A DNA stretch of 64,000 bases from Bispira polyomma (taxonomy: Eukaryota). This document shows, one piece after another, positions 1 to 51,700 of the stretch; position 1 is the stretch's first letter; each line of letters begins with the position of its first letter. A program made the position numbers and the translations under genes. The notes under the pieces were generated by a model. It was not told the DNA's origin, made no database searches, and saw nothing but the letters and a program-made list of their open reading frames with translations. The DNA is taken from assembly GCA_965649765.1 (NCBI GenBank), contig OZ287749.1, positions 41,726,001-41,790,000 of the forward strand. Direction: 5' to 3'.

Positions 1-81
1 ATTAACCATTTCCAGAAATTCATCAACTGTTTTGAAGATTATAAAGTTCTGTGTATTTCAAGGAGTACAGTTGAGAGATCA

Positions 82-219
82 TGAGGAAAAGTATTGCGTG
101 TTATTAATGACTTCATTATAAAATAGTGCTTGGATAAAGTATATGAACTCTGTTGCAAGACCCTGAGGAAAAGTATTGTATGTTAATAATGACTTTGTAT
201 AATAGTGCTTGGATAAAGT
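82..219 (+). repeat. Two ~58-bp direct repeats (82-bp period) in the L1 5' UTR
   Basis: TGAGGAAAAGTATTG...AATAGTGCTTGGATAAAGT at 82-140 and 164-219. Confidence 0.8.
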
Positions 220-260
220 GATACATTCTTAAAGACTTGTCTGATTGTTAAAGCACAAAT

Positions 261-1604
261 ATGTCTTTGGATAAAGAAGGCAATGCTGGAGCCCGAGGTG
301 GCAAAAAAGGCGGTATCCCTGAAAGTGCAAAAATTCAAAAAAGAGATTATGAGCTTGTATCTCCCACTTCACCAGAAGGAACTTTTAGCATGGCAAATAT
401 GGATAAATTATTTCAAAAGCACTTGGAACCAGTAACTACTGAACTTGATGAGTTACGTAGAGCTGTTGATTTCACGTCTGGTCAGCTAAAAGAGATCACA
501 GTCCTAACTAGCAGAATTGTAAATTTGGAACATGAAAATACAGTATTGAATGGTAAACTTCAAGAATCACAGACAAAATGTAACAAACTAGAAGAAAAGG
601 TTATATCTCTTGAACTATACTCAAGAAAGAATAACTTAAAATTTTTGGGTATCAAGAAAACATCTGGTGGTTCATCTGGTTATGACCAAGAAGACTGTGA
701 GTGCCTGATGTCAAATCTGTTCACAAAGTTGGGTCTTACTATTGCATCCAATGAAATAGAACGTGCACATCGATTGGGTCATTACAAGCTTGCTGATAGA
801 CCCATTATAGTTCGATTCTTAAACTACAAAAGTCGTCAGAAGGTTCTCCAAGAAAGAAAGAAACTCAAAGAAATCGGTGTTATAGTTACAGAGGATTTTC
901 CACAGGAAATCATGGCAAGACGTAAGATTTTTCAACCTGTTCTTCAGGCTGCCTATAAATCATCTGGCAAGTTCAAGGCACGCTTAAACACTGACAAACT
1001 GATCCCGAATGGGAAAACTTTTTCCTGTGATGATCTAGCTAAACTCCCTGAGGAACTTCAACCAAAAAATCTGTGTAACCCTGTGCGGGATGGAAAACTG
1101 GCTTTCTTTACACACCACTCAAAGCTATCAAACCACTACCAGTGCACATTCACTGAAGATGGACATTCCTTTAAATCAACTGAGCAGTACTACAACTACA
1201 TGAAGGCCAAGCATTTCCATGATGAGGAGAGTGTAACACTCATTATAAACTCAGAAACCCCAGTGACTGCTATGAACTCAGGGAAAAGAATTAAAAATTT
1301 CAACTCCCAGGGATGGAAACATGTGTGCAACAACTACATGCGACAAGGCCTTCAAGCAAAATTCTCCCAAAATGCTGATCTTTCCACTTTTCTAAAAGAA
1401 ACAGACCAGTTGATGTTGATTGAAGCCAACCCATATGATAAATACTGGAGAGTTGGCATCGCCTTAAACAAAAGTGTCGTTGGTACTTTAATTACATACA
1501 TGTTTTTTTTTGACTGTTGCTTACATTCTATTTTTATTTTTATATTTGACTTTCTACTTAACTCGCATTACAATGTGTCGCGGGAACATCAATTACACAT
1601 ATAA
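261..1604 (+). CDS. L1-type ORF1p (coiled coil + RRM + CTD) fused to a C-terminal NADAR/YbiA-like domain
   Basis: Heptad coiled coil (ELDELRRAV...LEEKVISLE), then L1 ORF1 RRM motifs SRKNNLKFLGI / IERAHRLG / RPIIVRFLNY / VTEDFPQE. From ~1098 NADAR motifs follow: FF..SKLSNHY, FKSTEQYY.YMKA, W....MRQGLQAKFSQN..L...L, LIEANPYDKYW.VG. The hydrophobic tail after ~1475 looks like read-through into the inter-ORF spacer. Confidence 0.85.
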   Translation: MSLDKEGNAGARGGKKGGIPESAKIQKRDYELVSPTSPEGTFSMANMDKLFQKHLEPVTTELDELRRAVDFTSGQLKEITVLTSRIVNLEHENTVLNGKLQESQTKCNKLEEKVISLELYSRKNNLKFLGIKKTSGGSSGYDQEDCECLMSNLFTKLGLTIASNEIERAHRLGHYKLADRPIIVRFLNYKSRQKVLQERKKLKEIGVIVTEDFPQEIMARRKIFQPVLQAAYKSSGKFKARLNTDKLIPNGKTFSCDDLAKLPEELQPKNLCNPVRDGKLAFFTHHSKLSNHYQCTFTEDGHSFKSTEQYYNYMKAKHFHDEESVTLIINSETPVTAMNSGKRIKNFNSQGWKHVCNNYMRQGLQAKFSQNADLSTFLKETDQLMLIEANPYDKYWRVGIALNKSVVGTLITYMFFFDCCLHSIFIFIFDFLLNSHYNVSREHQLHI

Positions 1605-1715
1605 TCTTCAACTGTTGGGGACATTATATTTTCATTTGATATTCAACCTTATACTCAGCTTGTATCACAATGTTTGTATAATTTTCACTTATATGTGTTG
1701 TTTACTTGATAATCA

Positions 1716-4700
1716 ATGTCTGATATCTTGAATGTATATAGCTTCAATGCTAGAGGCTTGAGGAACAAAACTAAGAGGCAATCAATTTTTCTATGGCTGA
1801 AAGCAAAATATAATAGTATATATTTTATACAAGAATCACATTCAACATCGATGTTAGAGCAAGGATGGAGACAAGAGTGGGGTGGTAGGGTAGAATTTTG
1901 TCATGGGAAATCAAACTGTAGGGGGGGTTACTACCTGTATATCAAGGGGTTTAAGTATTGACATCCTCAACATTGAACGTGACAGTACTGGTAGATTTCT
2001 GCTTATTGATTGTACTATAAGTGACATGAGCTATGTTCTTGTTAATCTCTATGCACCTACGTCTGATCATATACAAGAGCAAACTCTATTTGGCGAGTTT
2101 ATTTATCAGCATCTACAAAAATATTTTGGTCGAAACATCATAATTGGTGGAGATTTAAATATTAATCTAGACAAATTGAACCAAAATATGTCAATCAGTA
2201 ACACACCCCGGTGTAACGATTATCTAATTCAAATAATGCAGTCATTTGATTTAATTGATATCTGGAGAATACGCCATCCAAATACACAGAGATTCACCAG
2301 GAGAGAAAAAACTCGATATGGTTTTGCACAAACTAGGATAGATTTTTTCTTAATTTCCTGTCATCTCGAATATCTGATAAAATCAGCAGAAATACTGCCT
2401 AGTATAAAATCTGACCACAGCATACTTAGCATTTCATTGATTATGGAAAGAGAACAAAAACGTGGTAGAGGTCTGTGGAAACTGAATACCAGTCTTTTAC
2501 ATAATAAAGACTATATTAAACTTATAGAAGAAACAATAAGCAATGCTACTAAAGATATACACAATTTATTTGATAAAAGTATGACATGGGATTATATTAA
2601 ATGTCGAACTCGCACAGAATCAATTGGTTTTTCTATGTATAAAAATCGTAAAGATAAAAATTACCTAAATTCTTTGGTAAATAAACTGTCGGGTTTGGAG
2701 ACATTAATTTCAACCAACCCTTCATCACATCATAATGAAGAAATTGCCTTTATCAAAAGGGAAACAGAAAACATATACAATGAAAAGGCCAGAGGTTGCA
2801 TTATCAGGTCTAGGTGTCAGTTGACACAGGAATTTGAAAAGCCAACCAAATATTTTTTAAACTTAGAAAAAGCGAAACAAAGTATTATGCACATACGTTC
2901 ACTGATAGTGGGCAGTAGGAGAGTCTATCAGTCACAAGATATTTTTAAGGCCCAACAAAATTACTATACAAAACTTTATACAAGTTCTGCAACCAATGAT
3001 ATGATTAACAAATTTGATTGCGATCAATATCTGGAAAATGCCAGTATACCAACAATTTCAGACTCTACAAACCTGCTTTGTGAAAATGATATAACCTTAG
3101 AAGAGGTCAATAAAGCTGTCCTTGATCTGGCTGGTAACAAAGCACCTGGCCCTGATGGGCTTCCAGCTGAGTTTTATAAACAGTTTTGGAAACATATAGG
3201 CCATTATGTCTGTCAAAGTTTTGACCAGGCTTTTGAAAATGGCCAACTTTCTTCTAGCCAATAACAAGGCATCCTAAAATTAATTCCAAAGAAAGATAAG
3301 GATCTTACTGATCTAAAATCATGGCGTCCACTTTCTGTATTAAACACAGATTACAAAATTTTAGCTAAGGTTCTAAGTGGAAGATTGAAACATGGCCTAA
3401 AACAAATTATCAACCCTGACCAAATAGGATATATGGAAAATAGATTCTGTGGGGAAAACACAAGACTAATTGTTGATGTGATAGAATATTGCAAATTTCA
3501 TAGAAAACCATGTATTTTACTTCTAGTAGACTTTGACAAGGCTTTTGACACTGTAAGCTGGGATTTTCTGAGAAACTTTTCAAAGTATTATGGTTTTGGT
3601 AAAAAATTTCAAAGATGGATATCCATCTTGTATTGTGAAACTGAAAGTTGTGTAACTAACAATGGTTATCAGTCCGCCTATTTCAGATTGTCTAGAGGTA
3701 TCCGACAAGGCTGTCCTATCAGTGCACTTCTATTTTTGTTGGTAGCGGAAGTTATTGCGATAATTCTTTGTGAGTCTAACTCTGTTAATGGATTAATATT
3801 TTCCAAAATGCACATTAAACTATGTCAATTGGCGGATGACATGACAATGTTTTTAACTGATATGTCATCTGTTAAAAGTGTTCTTACTCTTTTTGAAGAA
3901 TTTACCGATATGCTGGCCTAAAACTGAATAAAAGCAAGACTGAAGCAATTATTATTGAGAATGACGGTACCTTAACAGAAGATCCCATTTTGGGCATATG
4001 GTGGATAAATAGTCCTTTCAAAACATTAGGAAAATGGTTTTCTGTTAACCATGAAGAAATGAGGATCTTGAATATAAATAATAAAATGGAAATAATCAAA
4101 TCTGTTCTTAATGTTTGGAAAATATGTTATCCATTTGGTATGATTTTATAACAGTGGAACCCCAAACTATAGATGACTTCTATTATGAAAATTTATTTCA
4201 CAATGATTTATTTCGAATTGATAACAAGGCTATAGCCCATGAATATACTGACTGGGCAAATAGTGACATATTGGTTGTTTCTGATATTCTACAAGTTGAT
4301 GCTACTTTTGTAAAAAAAAAACGATTTAGAAAGAAGGTATAACTTAATCATATGTGATATGAAATATAACAAAATTGTAAGCTCAGTATATTCAAGGTTC
4401 AGAAAAATTCCAAAAGCAAATACATTTGGTTCAACTTCTGGTAACAGTGTTCCTCAAAGATTCATTACTGATATCAGTAGTGTTAAGAACAGAGTTGTGT
4501 ATAATTTTTTGGTTAAATCAGTATATAAAATTCCATCAAATGAAAACAAATGGGTAGAATATTACCCCTTTTTAGAAGTCATAGATTGGAAAAATATTTA
4601 TCTACTGCCAACTAAGATTGTTCAGGACACATATTTAGTAACCTTTCAGTTCATAATATTACATAGAATTTTTACATGTAACTACAAGTTATTTTTGTGG

Positions 4701-5093
4701 AATATTAGAGATTCGCCAACATGCAGCTATTGTAAACATGTAGATAACCTAGAACATTTTTTCTTCTATTGTCATGACACAAATTATTTTTGGAAGCAGG
4801 TTGAGAGATGGTTGCTTGTAAATTTGTCAGTATCTGTAAACTTTTCTGTTTTAGAAGTCTTATTTGAATTAATTCACTTTAATCCAAAATATTACTACAT
4901 TGTTAATTATATACTGCTCATAGGAAAATATTACATTAAACAATGTAAAAAGAATGAGTCGAAAGTTTCCTTTTATGGTTTTCCGCATATAGTTAAGGAT
5001 AAATTGAAGATAGAGGAACTAGTTTTTCTCAAAAAATGTAAGGGTGAGGTTTTTGTAAATCATTTTGGCGAGTTAATGCTAGCCTTACAGTAA
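1716..5093 (+). pseudogene. L1/Tx1 ORF2 (APE endonuclease, reverse transcriptase, C-terminal CCHC zinc knuckle), disrupted
   Basis: EN motifs SFNARGL, FIQESH, NLYAP, GGDLN, RIDFFL, SDHS. RT motifs KAPGPDG, WRPLSVLNTDYK, DFDKAFD, GIRQGCPIS, QLADD. C-terminal CSYCKHVDNLEHFFFYC. Lesions: +1 frameshift in the G7 run (1921-1927), in-frame TAA at 3262-3264, frameshift ~3903, apparent internal deletion ~4115, frameshift in the A run ~4311-4321. Confidence 0.92.
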
Positions 5094-6932
5094 TTTTGGT
5101 TTGGATGTTATAATGTTATACGTACCAGTATTGTTTTTGTGCTAGGGACTTCTGTATCATGTACAAAAAAGAACAATAAAATTTTTTAAAAAAACCTAAT
5201 TTATAGGAGTGGATGTTACCTTTACAAGACAGGCAAATTATAGCTGATAAAAAGCATGACCTATTTTCTAGTGTGTACAAAGCATAAACAACTCAAGCCC
5301 GTGTTATATGAATACATTATGACTTCAAATGTCACACAAAGTAAATGATTACAATGTATTTACTAAACAAATCTGCCTCTAATTTTCACTCTTTGTAAAG
5401 ATCAATTGTAAAAATAAGGGATAATAAACTCATGTAAACAATTGAATAAATAGAAAAAAGTGTTAAAACTAAATGTTCTGTGATCTATATATGTAAGCAT
5501 GTTTTAAAACCCAAGGAAATCCCAACTTTATTTTTTTTTAAATTTATAACTTTCCTATTTCTGTACATACAAATCCTAATTTACATGTATGTTTACATTA
5601 GCCATAACATATATAGATATATAGTTACATATATAATACATATACAACAATCTACAAATACAAACAATTAGTTATTTTAAATACTAGAAAGATGTTAAAA
5701 ATCTAGAAAGATGTTAGAAATCCCAACGTTGTTGCCTCTGCCTTATTTGATCAATACACACTTAGACATGGATTGAAGATGTTTCACAATATTGCACACA
5801 AAATAATTGTGGGTAGGAAAAGTGGGCTAAAGGGAGATGCAGGTAATACTTGATTAATGGATAATTTTAATTTAAGGTATTTCTTTTAGATGTTTTAACC
5901 AATGACATTATATTGTGGAAAATTAATTCCACTTAAACATTTGTATAATTCTGATTTTTAAAAAAACTTGTAATATTTAAAACATTACTAATAAGCAATG
6001 GTAGCCTTGTTAAATTATATGCCTATCTGTCTTAATAATGAGTGCAAAAGTGATTTCACATGGTTACTCATTCAATTATTCATATTCATGATTCATCACT
6101 TCATATGTACTAAAGTACAGTTTTAATACTTGAACAGACTCGTCTAAAAAGTCTATATAAATATATATAAAGTTTATTTAAACACAGACTTAAAAAAGGT
6201 TGAAAAGAAATAGCAAAATTTAACCGTGCTTGTTAAATAAGCCCTTGAGTCAGTGATAGATACTCTTAATCACCGTTTGGTTCCTTGACATCTGAACGCT
6301 AACTGTATAATAAACTATCCCAAAACTTTTACCCATGTTTTTTGTAATGTAAAAGTTCAGAATGAAACAAATGAATTCGGTAAATATCTTTACAATATCT
6401 TTACATATCTAAAGGCTTGGTCTTATTCAGATTTTCGTTCATGACTCTTCGTAGCGGGCGGTTGCACCACGTATCTAGTGTTACATGACGAACACTACAA
6501 CCCCCCCCCCCCCCCACCCCCACCCCCCATTATCTCCCAAATTACCCTTCCCAGACGAAGCTAGGGCGAGTTTGAAACAAAACTGTGACGACCGTGCCCC
6601 AGAAATGAAACATACCTTCACTGTCACAATCTACAACAAAACTAGATGGACCTGCCGCAAAAGTGACACATACCCTGCGCCCCCTTTACCCCACAAAACC
6701 CCTTACGAACGCACATTTAGCATCTGAGCATTTCAAAACTTTTGGAGCAGCGCTACTAAAATGCTCACAGATATCAACAAAAACTTCCGAAGTGCTCCTA
6801 ATGTAGACCAAATTGAAACAAAGTTGAAACCTACTGTGACTGATTGCTACAAAGATGTCCGTGGTGCATGCATGACGGGTTTCCATGAAAATGAAACAAC
6901 AAAATTAAGAACAATACTCTGTTGGATATTTG

Positions 6933-14297: not shown

Positions 14298-15335
14298 GAC
14301 CCGTATTATTCACAAAAGAGGCCGAGACTGAATTTTGTCTCAAGTCTCAAGTTTTGGTCTCAACTTTGAGACCAAAAACAGTCTCAGACTGGGTAGGTAT
14401 TCACAAAAGAGTTGAGACCAAATTTAGTCTCAGATTTGGTCTCAAAGTTAAGACATGTTGGGAGGTGTCTCAGAGTGGTCTCAACTTCAAATATGGCAGG
14501 TCATACAAGACATTTTGAGGAGTTATTTGGAGATATATCTCTGAGAAGGCAGAGAGTATTTAGGGACAGATTAAATCCGCTGGATTACTTGAGTGATGTG
14601 GAAATTGTGGAGAAGTACCGCATTTCAAGGGAGGGGATATTTTTTATTTGTGATCTGTTGCAAGCTAGCCTTCAGCACCCAACACGTCGATCCCAAGCTA
14701 TACTGGTCCACCTGCAGGTGTTGACAGCCCTGTATTATGTAGCCTCGGGGTCATTTCAAAGAGTAATATCGGACTGCCATGATTTAGGAATCTCTCAGCC
14801 TTCTGTCAGCAGAATTGTGAAGAAATTTGTTCTAAAACTAAACCGCAATATTGACCATTTCATTAAATATCCAACTGGCAGAAACCAAATTTTAGAAAAC
14901 CAACAAAATTTCTATCAGCAGTTCAGGATACCCAATGTTATTGGTTTAGTAGATGGCACCCATGTACAGATACTAGCCCCAACTCAAAACGAAGATGTGT
15001 TTGTCAATAGAAACAACTATTACTCAATAAATGTTCAAATTATATGTGATCAAAACAGTCATATAATCAACATAGTTGTTGAATGGCCCGGGTCAGTACA
15101 TGACTCTAGTATTTTGAGAGAGTCCCCAGCTTGGCAATATTTTAATACTCCGAGGCCACAGGGTTCACCACAGGCTGGGCTTTTGTTAAGGGTTTCAGGG
15201 TATCCTTGCCTCAATTGGCTGATAACACCATACCCATACCTACCCAGTCTGAGGCTGTTTTGGGTCTCAAAGTTGAGACCAAATCTTGAGACTTGAGACA
15301 AAATTCAGTCTCAGCCTTTTTTGTGAATACGGGCC
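14298..15335 (+). mobile_element. PIF/Harbinger DNA transposon, internally deleted non-autonomous copy, in intron 1
   Basis: ~100-bp near-perfect TIRs (GACCCGTATT..CACAAAA...CAGACTGGGTA / TACCCAGTCTG...TTGTGAATACGGGCC), 3-bp TSD CAG (14295-14297 and 15336-15338), and an internal HARBI1-like ORF. Confidence 0.9.
14493..15296 (+). pseudogene. Truncated Harbinger (HARBI1-like DDE) transposase
   Basis: RVFRDR.NPL, LQVLTALYYVASGSFQ, GISQPSVSR, IGLVDGTHV, FVNR..YYSINVQIICD, WPGSVHDS. The GDSGY motif is altered to RVSGY, and the protein runs into the right TIR after LITPY, so the final catalytic Glu region is missing. Confidence 0.88.
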
Positions 15336-48715: not shown

Positions 48716-51700
48716 AGTTTGGCGGGAGTGGGCCATACTCTACTATAATATTTTGTAATAAGATCTACATCTGCACGGTTATTTGTTGGTATTTATGTTT
48801 TTTCTAACCTTTTTACATTAAATTTGAGTAGTTTCGCTGTTTTATGTTGTTAATTTAGTCTCGTTTTGCTGTTCTATATTGTAAATTTTTTTTCCAAATT
48901 CTGTACATTTATTTATTAGTATTTATGATTTTTCTATTCCCTTTATATTTACTTTTTACCTCATTTTGCTGTTCTATATTGTAAATTACATGTTGGTGTG
49001 GTTGTACTTAGCTTAAGGTCAGGCTATAGTGTGGGGTGCTAGGGTGCGAGTGAGTCGCCCACAGGACGAAGAATTGTGCGGTGAGTTGTAGGGACAAGCT
49101 TTCTGAGGCTCCCCACTGTTGAGTTCAGGTTAAGGGCTTCTTTTTTTCTACAACCTCACTAGGCATGTTTCTGCTTCGGTTTGTCCTTTTTCAGCACTTT
49201 TTGCTGTGGCTATGGCTCATAGGTATGAGTTGTTGCATCACAGTGTTGCTCATATATCAGCAACCTCATTGGCTAAAGTGGCAAAAAAATTTTCATACAC
49301 ATGTTCTTGTCGTAAATTTCCTACCACCATTAATGGAAGAGGTCTTGTCTTGTTATTTTTACTCGCCGGCGATGTGTCCCTTAACCCTGGTCCTGTCATG
49401 CTCGGGGTGTTAAATGCTAGATCCGTGAGGAACAAGGGTCCACTCCTTGCAGATATTGTGACATCGCACGACCTCGACATCCTTTGTATTACTGAGACCC
49501 ATGTTCGTCTATCTGATACGGATAGTTTCCTACGGTCTGTTACTCCTCCAGATTTTGTGTTTCCTCAAACGCCTCGTCCCTCACGGATTGGTGGCGGTGT
49601 TGGTTTCTTCATCAGATCCTCCTACAAACCACATAAAATAGATTCTCCTGTCTATCAGTCCTTTGAAAATATGGTGGTGTCAATTGGGCTTCATGGCCGC
49701 TCACTGTTGCTTGCCTGCGTCTATCGCCCCCCAGGATCATGTACCTGTAATTTTTTAGAAGAATTTATGTCTTTTGTTGGTTTCTTGTCTTCCATTAACA
49801 GTTCATATCATATCTGTGGTGACTTTAACATCCATGTTGATGCACCAGTTGGTGACGGTCATAAATTTATGACCTTTCTTGATTCATGCGATTTAAAACA
49901 GTTAGTTAGACAACCTACCCATCTGCATGGTCACATTCTGGACCTTATTTTATCTCCTTGTGATCAGGATACTATTGTGGATGTCAAAGTCTGTGATTTC
50001 ATATCGGATCATGCATTAGTCAAATGCTCAATTGCCTCTCCCCCACAGGTGGCTCATATTCCCAATACAGTGCATTATAGGAGGTACCACCGTATTAACA
50101 TGTCTGACCTCCATACTGATCTTGAGAGTACTTCCTTTATTAAGTCACCTGCCAATTCTGTAGCCAAACTTTATGAACAATACATACATGACTTGGGTGA
50201 TGTACCAGATAAGCATGCACCACTTGTATCCAGAATGTCAAAGAAAGAATCTGTGCATTGGCTTTCTGATTCTTACCGACGGGCTAAATCTCTCAGGCGC
50301 CAATATGAAAGAACTTGGCGAAGGGCCAAGAATCCATTAAATAGAAGTCGACTATGTCGCCAGATTGCTCAGTGCAATGTACTTGTTAACGAGGATAAGT
50401 CGGTGTATTACAGTAAACTTATCTCTGACAACAGTCACAACTCCAGGAAGCTGTGGCACGAACTGCGCAAGACCCTTAATATGGATCCCAATGTGGCACT
50501 CCCGTCCCATGATTCTGATAAATCACTAGCTGATAAGTTTGCTTCCTTTTTCTCGGACAAAATTAAGAGAATTAGGGATATTTTTATTGTCTCTGGAACT
50601 AAAATTGATGTTCATCTTCTTTCTGATCCCCCAGAAATTACTGCCTTTGCCAGAGTCTCTGAAGATGATGTTAGTAAAATAATAAGTAACTCGCCTACAA
50701 AATCCTGCAAGTTGGATCCATGGCCAACATCTCTTATTAAAGAATGTAGTGATATATTACTACCATCCATTACAAAACTTGTAAACTGCTCATTTACGGA
50801 GGGACATGTACCTGATGGTTTTAAAACAGCTGTGGTTACTCCTCTTATTAAGAAGGCTTCTCTTCCAGTTGATGACCTGAAGAATTATCGCCCTGTATCT
50901 GGTCTTAGTTTCATATCAAAACTGGTTGAACGCGTGGTTGCTAGGCAACTGTTAGATCACATCTTTGTCCACGACTTGGACAACCCATACCAGTCTGCGT
51001 ATAAAACTGGTCATTCGACTGAGACAGCTCTTCTGTCTATAAAAAATGAAGTTCACTTATCTTTGTCAAGAGGGGAACCTACTGCCCGTGTATTGCTCGA
51101 CCTCTCTGCTGCCTTTGACACCATTGATCATTCCACGCTTCTCAGTTGTCTTCAGACTTGGTTCGGAGTTACGGGCTCTGTTCTTAAATGGTTCACTTCC
51201 TACTTAACTGATCGTTATCAGTCGATAAAAATTGGCTCTACTCTGTCCGATCTTTGTAAACTCTTGTTTGGTGTTCCTCAAGGTTCTGTTTTGGGCCCTC
51301 TGTTGTTCTCATTATACACTGCTCCTCTCAGATTGGTTATTGGCAAATACACAGGAATAAAGTTTCATTTTTATGCAGATGATACCCAAATTTATGTGCA
51401 CCTATCCCATAAAAACACATCTACTGCCTTTGAACAGTTGAACAGGTGTCTTGATGATGTGAAAGAGTGGATGTCAACTGGTAAACTCAAACTTAATCCC
51501 GACAAGACTGAGTTCATAATCTTTGGCTCAAAACAACAGAGGGATAAGTTAAAAGCATTGTTTCCAGTTGACATCCTGGGTAGCCCTTTCAGTCCAGCTG
51601 ATTCTGTCAAGAACCTGGGTGTATGGTTTGACTCTGACTTTTCTTTCTCTAAACACGTTCAGAGTGTCTGCAAAAGCTGTTTTATGCAACTCCGTGACTT

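Follow-up and report, generated by a model that had tools for sequence, protein, structure and literature searches.

A NADAR domain fused to the ORF1 protein of an L1-type LINE in Bispira polyomma, with a possible role in clearing base-linked ADP-ribose

Results and Discussion

A 64,000-nt stretch of Bispira polyomma DNA (GenBank assembly GCA_965649765.1, contig OZ287749.1, positions 41,726,001 to 41,790,000 of the forward strand; hereafter the window) holds, near its start, a copy of a long interspersed nuclear element (LINE) whose first open reading frame (ORF1) joins an L1-type ORF1 protein (ORF1p) to a NADAR domain of the YbiA family. The fusion is family-wide and occurs in many deeply diverged lineages. 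Sequence comparison indicates that the NADAR domain is under purifying selection, with its ADP-ribose-binding and catalytic residues retained, and that it is probably an active N-glycosidase. The role that we favor, at a probability of roughly 45%, is that NADAR domains carried on the ribonucleoprotein (RNP) of the element clear base-linked ADP-ribose from its RNA, from nascent cDNA or from target strands.

Structure of the ORF1p-NADAR fusion

A single open reading frame of 447 amino acids (aa) runs from 261 to 1604 (+) in the ORF listing of the window, and the C-terminal part of its product is almost certainly a YbiA-family NADAR domain, which makes the feature as a whole a LINE ORF1p fused to NADAR. 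The Pfam family PF08719 (NADAR) matched ORF1 residues 285-402 with an E-value of 5.1e-28 (98.8 bits against a cut-off of 35.1). TIGR02464, the NCBIfam model for the YbiA-type "riboflavin biosynthesis intermediates N-glycosidase", scored 95.6 bits against a cut-off of 73.7. Of the 163 positions of the PF08719 profile, the window copy matches no more than 9-135, whereas intact relatives reach from 9 to 162 with scores of 125-148 bits. When the PDB was searched with a profile built from an alignment of 17 fusion proteins (11 genome lineages plus public homologues), the NADAR half matched the NADAR protein of P. nicotianae (8bau, E 1.3e-27) and E. coli YbiA (2b3w, E 2.7e-22). An AlphaFold2 model was made for L038, an intact copy that is 96% identical to the window copy (pLDDT 78), and compared with the PDB by Foldseek. 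The only strong matches were 8bau (E 4e-9, TM 0.62), YbiA 2b3w (TM 0.63) and the chains of the human L1 ORF1p trimer (TM 0.64-0.68). The complete YbiA fold, a helical core between two small sheets, is present in intact L038 and not in the window copy.

The upstream half of ORF1 matched human LINE-1 ORF1p in the same PDB profile search (2ykp/2yko, E 7e-8; 2ldy, the solution structure of the RNA recognition motif (RRM) and C-terminal domain (CTD) of L1 ORF1p, E 5.7e-3). The L038 model begins with a disordered N-terminus, continues with a single 78-residue helix at residues 44-121 (pLDDT 75-91), the RRM and the CTD, and enters the NADAR domain about 15 residues past the CTD. The helix aligns to the coiled coil of human L1 ORF1p; it was modelled as a single chain, the trimer being a known feature of L1. 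Pfam Transposase_22 (L1 ORF1) had no match at E<=0.1 among the window proteins. This family is probably built mostly on vertebrate L1, and because the PDB profile and fold matches both lead to L1 ORF1p, the miss was read as divergence and not as a different fold. In intact members, ORF1p thus opens with a disordered N-terminal stretch and a long coiled coil, followed by the L1-type RRM and CTD and, beyond a short conserved linker, by a complete NADAR domain.

These results agree closely with a preliminary description of the window, made from its sequence alone, which had proposed one ORF joining the coiled coil, RRM and CTD of L1 ORF1p to NADAR. The joined ORF was recovered at the same place by the ORF listing, Pfam and NCBIfam, and its L1-type half is borne out by the 2ykp/2yko match and the Foldseek comparison. 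The NADAR motifs follow one another in the order that had been read from the sequence (LSNHY, STEQYY.YMKAK, KFSQN, LIEANPYDKYW.VG), and the profile and structure comparisons that the description had suggested for this domain all returned it (Pfam, TIGR02464, PDB profiles, and AlphaFold2 with Foldseek).

The second reading frame (ORF2) places the element, by sequence, in the L1 superfamily of LINEs. The 901-aa ORF2 of a sister lineage (L034) matched human L1 ORF2p over residues 2-890 (E 4e-87), compared to a match in the reverse transcriptase (RT) only with R2 proteins (1e-25), and the Pfam domains Exo_endo_phos, RVT_1 and zf-RVT were found in ORF2. The narrower label "Tx1" is taken from the literature on oyster elements (PMC12477816) and not from an RT phylogeny of the elements examined here.

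Distribution of the fusion

A six-frame search of the genome (1.04 Gb in 14 chromosome-size contigs) returned 96 scored matches from 2188 first-look candidates. The matches fall into 11 or more lineages, with identities of 40-96%; nearly all of them cover query residues ~1-405, and many have intact frames of 425-443 aa. Among public sequences, 1.84 billion cluster representatives were searched exhaustively with a profile, and 3409 homologous proteins scored at E<=1e-30. The best 158 representatives of 50%-identity clusters were examined, 150 from this profile search and the rest from another search. Full fusions, in which a single matching stretch starts no later than the RRM and continues to where NADAR ends, made up 133 of the 158 (median length 429 aa), while 17 were fragments and eight matched in NADAR only, six of these with three to seven tandem NADAR domains. 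Clusters of 415-489 aa in the ESM Atlas in which 100% of members carry NADAR are eukaryotic, and the sole phylum recorded for them, from very few records, is Annelida. The preliminary description had left it to a family survey whether NADAR is consistently fused to ORF1 and upstream of ORF2; it is so in dozens of intact copies of the genome lineages and is not a one-off. Natural copies, and no reconstructed consensus, were used in every comparison.

Candidates for sister ORF1s that lack NADAR were also considered and rejected: the short unannotated matches are broken copies, as in P0011, where NADAR then appears in another gene call. A word-indexed search for stand-alone close relatives of the LINE NADAR returned none, a result that is uninformative as to their absence. 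As a separate observation, a 425-aa mollusc cluster in the ESM Atlas, 78% of whose members carry Impact_N (PF01205), aligns along the ORF1p model with a TM of 0.46. To judge from this modelled fold, it may be the ORF1 of a further LINE whose accessory domain at the C-terminus is of another kind.

Selection and catalytic residues

Mean identity across the 11 lineages was 0.49 for NADAR, 0.44 for the RRM, 0.53 for the CTD and 0.31 for the coiled coil; the NADAR domain is therefore conserved on par with the RRM and CTD and above the coiled coil. Between lineages, the proportion of synonymous differences (pS) is saturated at 0.76-0.83 versus a proportion of nonsynonymous differences (pN) in NADAR of 0.23-0.29. 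Within families, pairs among 34 intact ORFs have few differing sites, with ratios that scatter noisily between 0.1 and 2.4, and no pairs of intermediate divergence were present. Noisy, near-neutral ratios are what is expected of dead copies that decay neutrally after insertion, and the saturated between-lineage comparison is the only informative selection contrast.

In the NADAR protein of P. nicotianae, residues E43, K50, W89, E125, D130 and W133 (8bau numbering) bind ADP-ribose or catalyse its hydrolysis (PMC11543638). They correspond to E311, K318, W355, E391, D396 and W399 of L038, and all six are present in the window ORF. Among the 133 fusion representatives, E43 is retained in 132, K50 in 122, W89 in 131, E125 in 132, D130 in 127 and W133 in 119. 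The last-strand residue of the LINE NADAR is Glu, and not Asp or His; a Glu at this position marks the YbiA family (PMC11125620). The constraint on the domain, which the preliminary description had named as a point to be checked, is thus apparent both between lineages and in the near invariance of the two catalytic Glu residues.

Possible roles of the NADAR domain

L1 ORF1p coats the RNA of its element in cis, and a NADAR domain attached to it would therefore be carried in many copies on the element RNP. There it would strip ADP-ribose from G or C bases of LINE RNA, nascent cDNA or exposed single strands at the target site, and reverse transcription would as a result not be blocked. We put forward this clearing of base-linked ADP-ribose because it combines coating in cis with the published biochemistry of NADAR proteins. 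All NADAR families tested remove ADP-ribose from guanine in DNA (PMC11543638, PMC11125620) and RNA (PMC11833690), and NADAR- and YbiA-type enzymes also remove cytosine-linked ADP-ribose (PMC12945103). ADP-ribosylation of phosphate ends is not touched by NADARs, and the higher activity of one NADAR has been ascribed to nucleic-acid binding (PMC11833690).

A further step concerns the source of the ADP-ribose. If a transferase of the host (CARP-1-like) or of a microbe attached it, the NADAR domain would serve as a counter-defence. Such an origin seems rather unlikely to us; one point in its favor is that homologues of CARP-1, which are guanine-N2 DNA ADP-ribosyltransferases, occur mainly in Bivalvia (PMC12945103), the group in which LINEs of this kind were first noted. 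T4-like phages defeat DarTG1 with an orphan NADAR (PMC11825919). The preliminary description had read the fusion as a counter-ADP-ribosylation system. The architecture of the protein, the selection on its domain and published NADAR biochemistry (PMC11125620, PMC11833690, PMC12945103) bear out the premises of that reading; action of the domain on the RNA or cDNA of the element is plausible, and a host or microbial origin of the modification is the more doubtful part. More broadly still, lophotrochozoans (bivalves, perhaps annelids and gastropods) might restrict retroelements by base ADP-ribosylation, with transferases of the CARP-1 type or related ones, which a large, ancient LINE clade would escape through an ORF1p-tethered NADAR that covers its RNA and cDNA; this proposal is speculative and on balance improbable.

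Several observations weigh against the proposed clearing role or its counter-defence extension. The window copy cannot encode a complete NADAR domain, and R93 of 8bau, which contacts phosphate, is variable in LINE NADARs. A search of the genome for transferases with four profiles (Enterotoxin_a PF01375, DarT PF14487, ADPrib_exo_Tox PF03496 and Scabin-like PF22596) found no match; this search went exon by exon, control genomes were equally silent and CARP-1 was not among the profiles, so the result is uninformative. No RNA run contains the window stretch, and the matching contigs of other samples are short pieces of a collapsed high-copy repeat, which cannot show transcription. The link from the host of the window to the CARP-1 of bivalves is indirect. 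In addition, E. coli YbiA also cleaves intermediates of the riboflavin pathway, and sequence cannot tell the two substrates apart. Finally, among named relatives outside LINEs, the nearest are multi-NADAR proteins of molluscs at 30-33% identity, whose architecture resembles that of C. elegans SNA-3 and hints at an origin in RNA processing.

This last point leads to the first of several alternative explanations. It is possible that the NADAR was acquired from a host NADAR gene and serves in RNA processing or housekeeping. It would then act, as part of normal RNP maturation, on an endogenous N-glycosidic RNA adduct (for example an NAD-derived moiety or a base modification that is physiological and reversible) and would not counter any defence. 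We regard this as unlikely; animals are not known to have an endogenous N-glycosidic RNA substrate of this kind, the NADARs tested so far all act on base-linked ADP-ribose, and 30-33% identity to the host proteins is insufficient to make them donors. The explanation nevertheless accommodates the lack of a match to the four transferase profiles (with the controls equally silent), and RNA-intermediate processing has been proposed for such domains (PMC12477816). The mollusc relatives, with their three to seven tandem NADARs, add to it, as SNA-3 has been linked to trans-splicing (PMC11125620).

Loss of catalysis is a second possibility, in which the domain would persist as a structural, nucleic-acid-binding or ADP-ribose-reading module of ORF1p. 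The variable ligand contact equivalent to R93 would fit such a module, but the retention of both Glu residues in 132 of the 133 representatives, together with the Lys in 122 and D130 in 127, is a pattern typical of active enzymes, and we consider this explanation very unlikely. About equally unlikely is a small-molecule N-glycosidase with no nucleic-acid substrate, acting on riboflavin-pathway intermediates or on NAD and ADP-ribose metabolites, as has been suggested for E. coli YbiA. The above-cut-off TIGR02464 match and the YbiA-type Glu in the last strand would both be expected of it; however, what a LINE would gain is hard to see, in 133 diverged clusters the domain is covalently joined to a protein that binds RNA and forms RNPs, and removal of guanine-linked ADP-ribose from both DNA and RNA is documented for E. 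coli YbiA as well (PMC11125620, PMC11833690). The idea that the fusion is a single capture event, an assembly chimera or a product of read-through in this copy can be dismissed: the window copy does hold a deletion and a junk tail, but the fusion is in frame in dozens of intact copies, in at least 11 genome lineages and in 133 public cluster representatives, and contigs of other samples carry the intact C-terminus.

The function of NADAR in animals is posed as an open question in PMC11125620 and PMC12945103, and a very large, old and selected LINE clade with NADAR on its RNA-coating protein offers a concrete and cheap system in which to test it. Should counter-defence prove true, the logic of the bacterial DarT/NADAR conflict would extend to animal genomes and their transposons. 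It would then be the first known case in which an animal genome and its transposons oppose each other through ADP-ribosylation, the one defending itself with it and the other undoing it, and would mirror in eukaryotes the contest of DarTG1 with phage NADAR. Should it prove false, the fusion would still point to a hitherto undescribed RNA-processing step in retrotransposition.

Anatomy of the window copy and other features

The element begins 525 nt upstream of the window, as determined by blastn against family copies, and its parts within the window are as follows.

1..260 (+), 3' part of the 5' untranslated region (UTR) (blastn against family copies)
261..1604 (+), ORF1 as present, 447 aa, the ORF1p-NADAR fusion plus a nonsense tail (ORF listing, Pfam, NCBIfam)
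387..623 (+), coiled coil, residues 43-121 (AlphaFold2 helix, alignment to human L1 ORF1p)
624..896 (+), L1-type RRM with motifs SRKNNLKF.GI, ERAHRLG and RPIIVRF (2ykp/2yko, 2ldy, Foldseek)
897..1046 (+), ORF1p CTD (alignment, PDB profile, AlphaFold2, Foldseek)
1047-1085 (+), conserved linker KLPxELxPxNL after the CTD (alignment, PDB profile, AlphaFold2, Foldseek)
1086..1475 (+), NADAR domain (YbiA family) without its last ~28 residues (PF08719, TIGR02464)
1475..1476 (+), junction of a 1.2 kb internal deletion, L038 position 2725 joined to 3926 (blastn against L038)
1476..1715 (+), remnant of the ORF1-ORF2 spacer, of which 1476-1604 is translated as the junk tail of ORF1 (blastn against L038)
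1716..5093 (+), ORF2 remnants in several frames (Pfam; tblastn with the L034 ORF2)
~1716-2424 (+), APE endonuclease piece (Pfam, tblastn)
~3385-3921 (+), RT piece (Pfam, tblastn)
4120..4122 (+), second internal deletion, ~390 bp (L038 6527-6914), within ORF2 (blastn against L038)
~4509-4793 (+), zf-RVT piece (Pfam, tblastn)
5094..5193 (+), 3' UTR and A-rich tail (sequence; alignment with family copies extends to 5203)
5194..5402 (+), 3' copy of a ~209-bp target-site duplication (blastn)

The window copy is dead, with two internal deletions and a frameshifted ORF2. The 1.2 kb deletion, defined by blastn against L038, took the last ~25 codons of ORF1, which encode the C-terminus of NADAR (...NNSDLWDQNKWQGQNELGKLLLEIRETL), and most of the spacer between ORF1 and ORF2, and ORF1 residues 406-447 are a read-through of former spacer sequence. 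Contigs of other samples run on at position 1476 with sequence that encodes LWDQNKWQG, and the main form of the family is for this reason taken to be intact; further loose ends of such contigs lie at 4120/4122. Two statements of the preliminary description therefore hold only in part. ORF1 does precede ORF2, but the direct adjacency of the two was produced by the 1.2 kb deletion, and intact copies have a spacer between them. Likewise, an APE-RT ORF2 is present as described, but it lies in several frames, and the tail is A-rich and not a clean poly(A).

The A-rich 3' end and the ~209-bp target-site duplication identify the element as a genuine, moderately old retrotransposition event. The 5' copy of the duplication lies upstream of the window (L001:480-688) and matches window positions 5194-5402 by blastn at 213 of 220 positions. 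A duplication of this size is unusually long for L1, where 7-20 bp is usual. The 5' junction of the insertion shows a run of 22 G and 14 unmatched filler bases. In the 5' UTR, a unit of ~80 nt is tandemly duplicated at about 83-140 and 165-220, with self-similarity also at 70-143. Some family copies start at different 5' UTR units, which recalls the promoter monomers of L1.

The spacer that the window copy has largely lost measures 0.7-1.4 kb in the genome lineages and ~2 kb in L078. In every lineage it is AT-rich (26-30% GC) and non-coding (L038:2802-4165; likewise L031, L033, L034, L036, L039-L041 and L078), and in the lineages examined it contained neither an ORF nor notable tandem repeats and was not conserved from one lineage to another. 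The spacer might serve as an internal ribosome entry site or as a promoter for ORF2.

Other mobile-element sequences were also observed. An unrelated LINE ORF2 of 885 aa with APE and RT domains lies at 49206-51863 (+) of the window with no ORF1-NADAR nearby, and an ORF at 14412-15296 (+) contains a DDE_Tnp_4 (Harbinger/PIF-type) transposase domain. Elsewhere in the genome, matches to the protein-primed DNA polymerase B of Polinton-type elements were found, for example at C1:9973255-9974955 and C6:48955639-48956094.

Comparison with known systems

A NADAR domain in the ORF1 of an L1-type LINE has been noted before, and the novelty that the preliminary description had considered possible does not hold: Tx1 LINEs of Crassostrea gigas in Repbase carry a YbiA-family NADAR in ORF1 (PMC12477816, Genome Biol 2025). 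These elements share with the window family the L1/Tx1 type of LINE, the ORF1p and the NADAR family, and the two, compared by description only, very probably belong to the same clade. They differ in host genome and in how far they have been described, as PMC12477816 offers one sentence and a supplementary alignment, without analysis of the selection, catalytic residues, abundance or spread of NADAR-ORF1 LINEs. A survey of bivalve transposable elements makes no mention of NADAR-ORF1, and in the literature searched the terms "NADAR domain" and "ORF1" occur together only in PMC12477816. The same paper reports Gypsy elements of Ectocarpus that are comparable in being retroelements with an independently acquired YbiA-family NADAR. 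However, these are of the long terminal repeat (LTR) type, their NADAR sits at the N-terminus of Pol and not on the protein that coats the RNA, and bacterial sequences are reported as its nearest relatives.

A functional likeness is to the T4-type phage protein gp30.3, an orphan, antitoxin-like counter-defence against DarTG1 (PMC11825919, PMC11125620). It is a mobile-element NADAR that clears guanine ADP-ribosylation from its own nucleic acid, the model proposed here for the LINE. In contrast to the LINE domain, gp30.3 stands alone and carries His where the last strand of the LINE NADAR has Glu. The host transferase that it opposes is DarT1; for the LINE, the four-profile search with its silent controls found no counterpart.

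Metazoan multi-NADAR proteins, among them C. elegans SNA-3 and the Haliotis rufescens proteins LOC124138828 and LOC124129589, have NADARs of the same subtype and length as the LINE domain. The two kinds align at 30-33% identity without gaps, the C-terminal W..W.G.N.LG segment included. The multi-NADAR proteins differ in that they are products of host genes, with three to seven tandem NADARs and neither the RRM nor the CTD of ORF1. The tandem-NADAR proteins encountered among the public homologues were P0015 and P0024 (H. rufescens LOC124129589 and LOC124138828, respectively), P0023, P0033, P0078 and P0081. Proteins of this kind may be the donor lineage of the LINE NADAR or a domesticated derivative of it.

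Other accessory domains occur in LINE ORF1s, namely an esterase in CR1/L2-type elements and PHD domains, as reportedly described by Khazina and Weichenrieder in 2009 and by Metcalfe and Casane in 2014. These share with the present family the modular addition of a non-canonical domain to ORF1 and differ from it in LINE clade and chemistry; to our knowledge, NADAR is not listed in such surveys.

NADAR-ORF1 LINEs are a known but barely described kind. What this study adds to them is the anatomy of the window copy, with its deletions and long target-site duplication, and the end-to-end match of a family ORF2 to L1 ORF2p. It also adds the count of 133 mutually diverged fusion clusters among public sequences, whose catalytic residues hardly vary, the contrast by domain against saturated synonymous divergence, and the mollusc multi-NADAR relatives.

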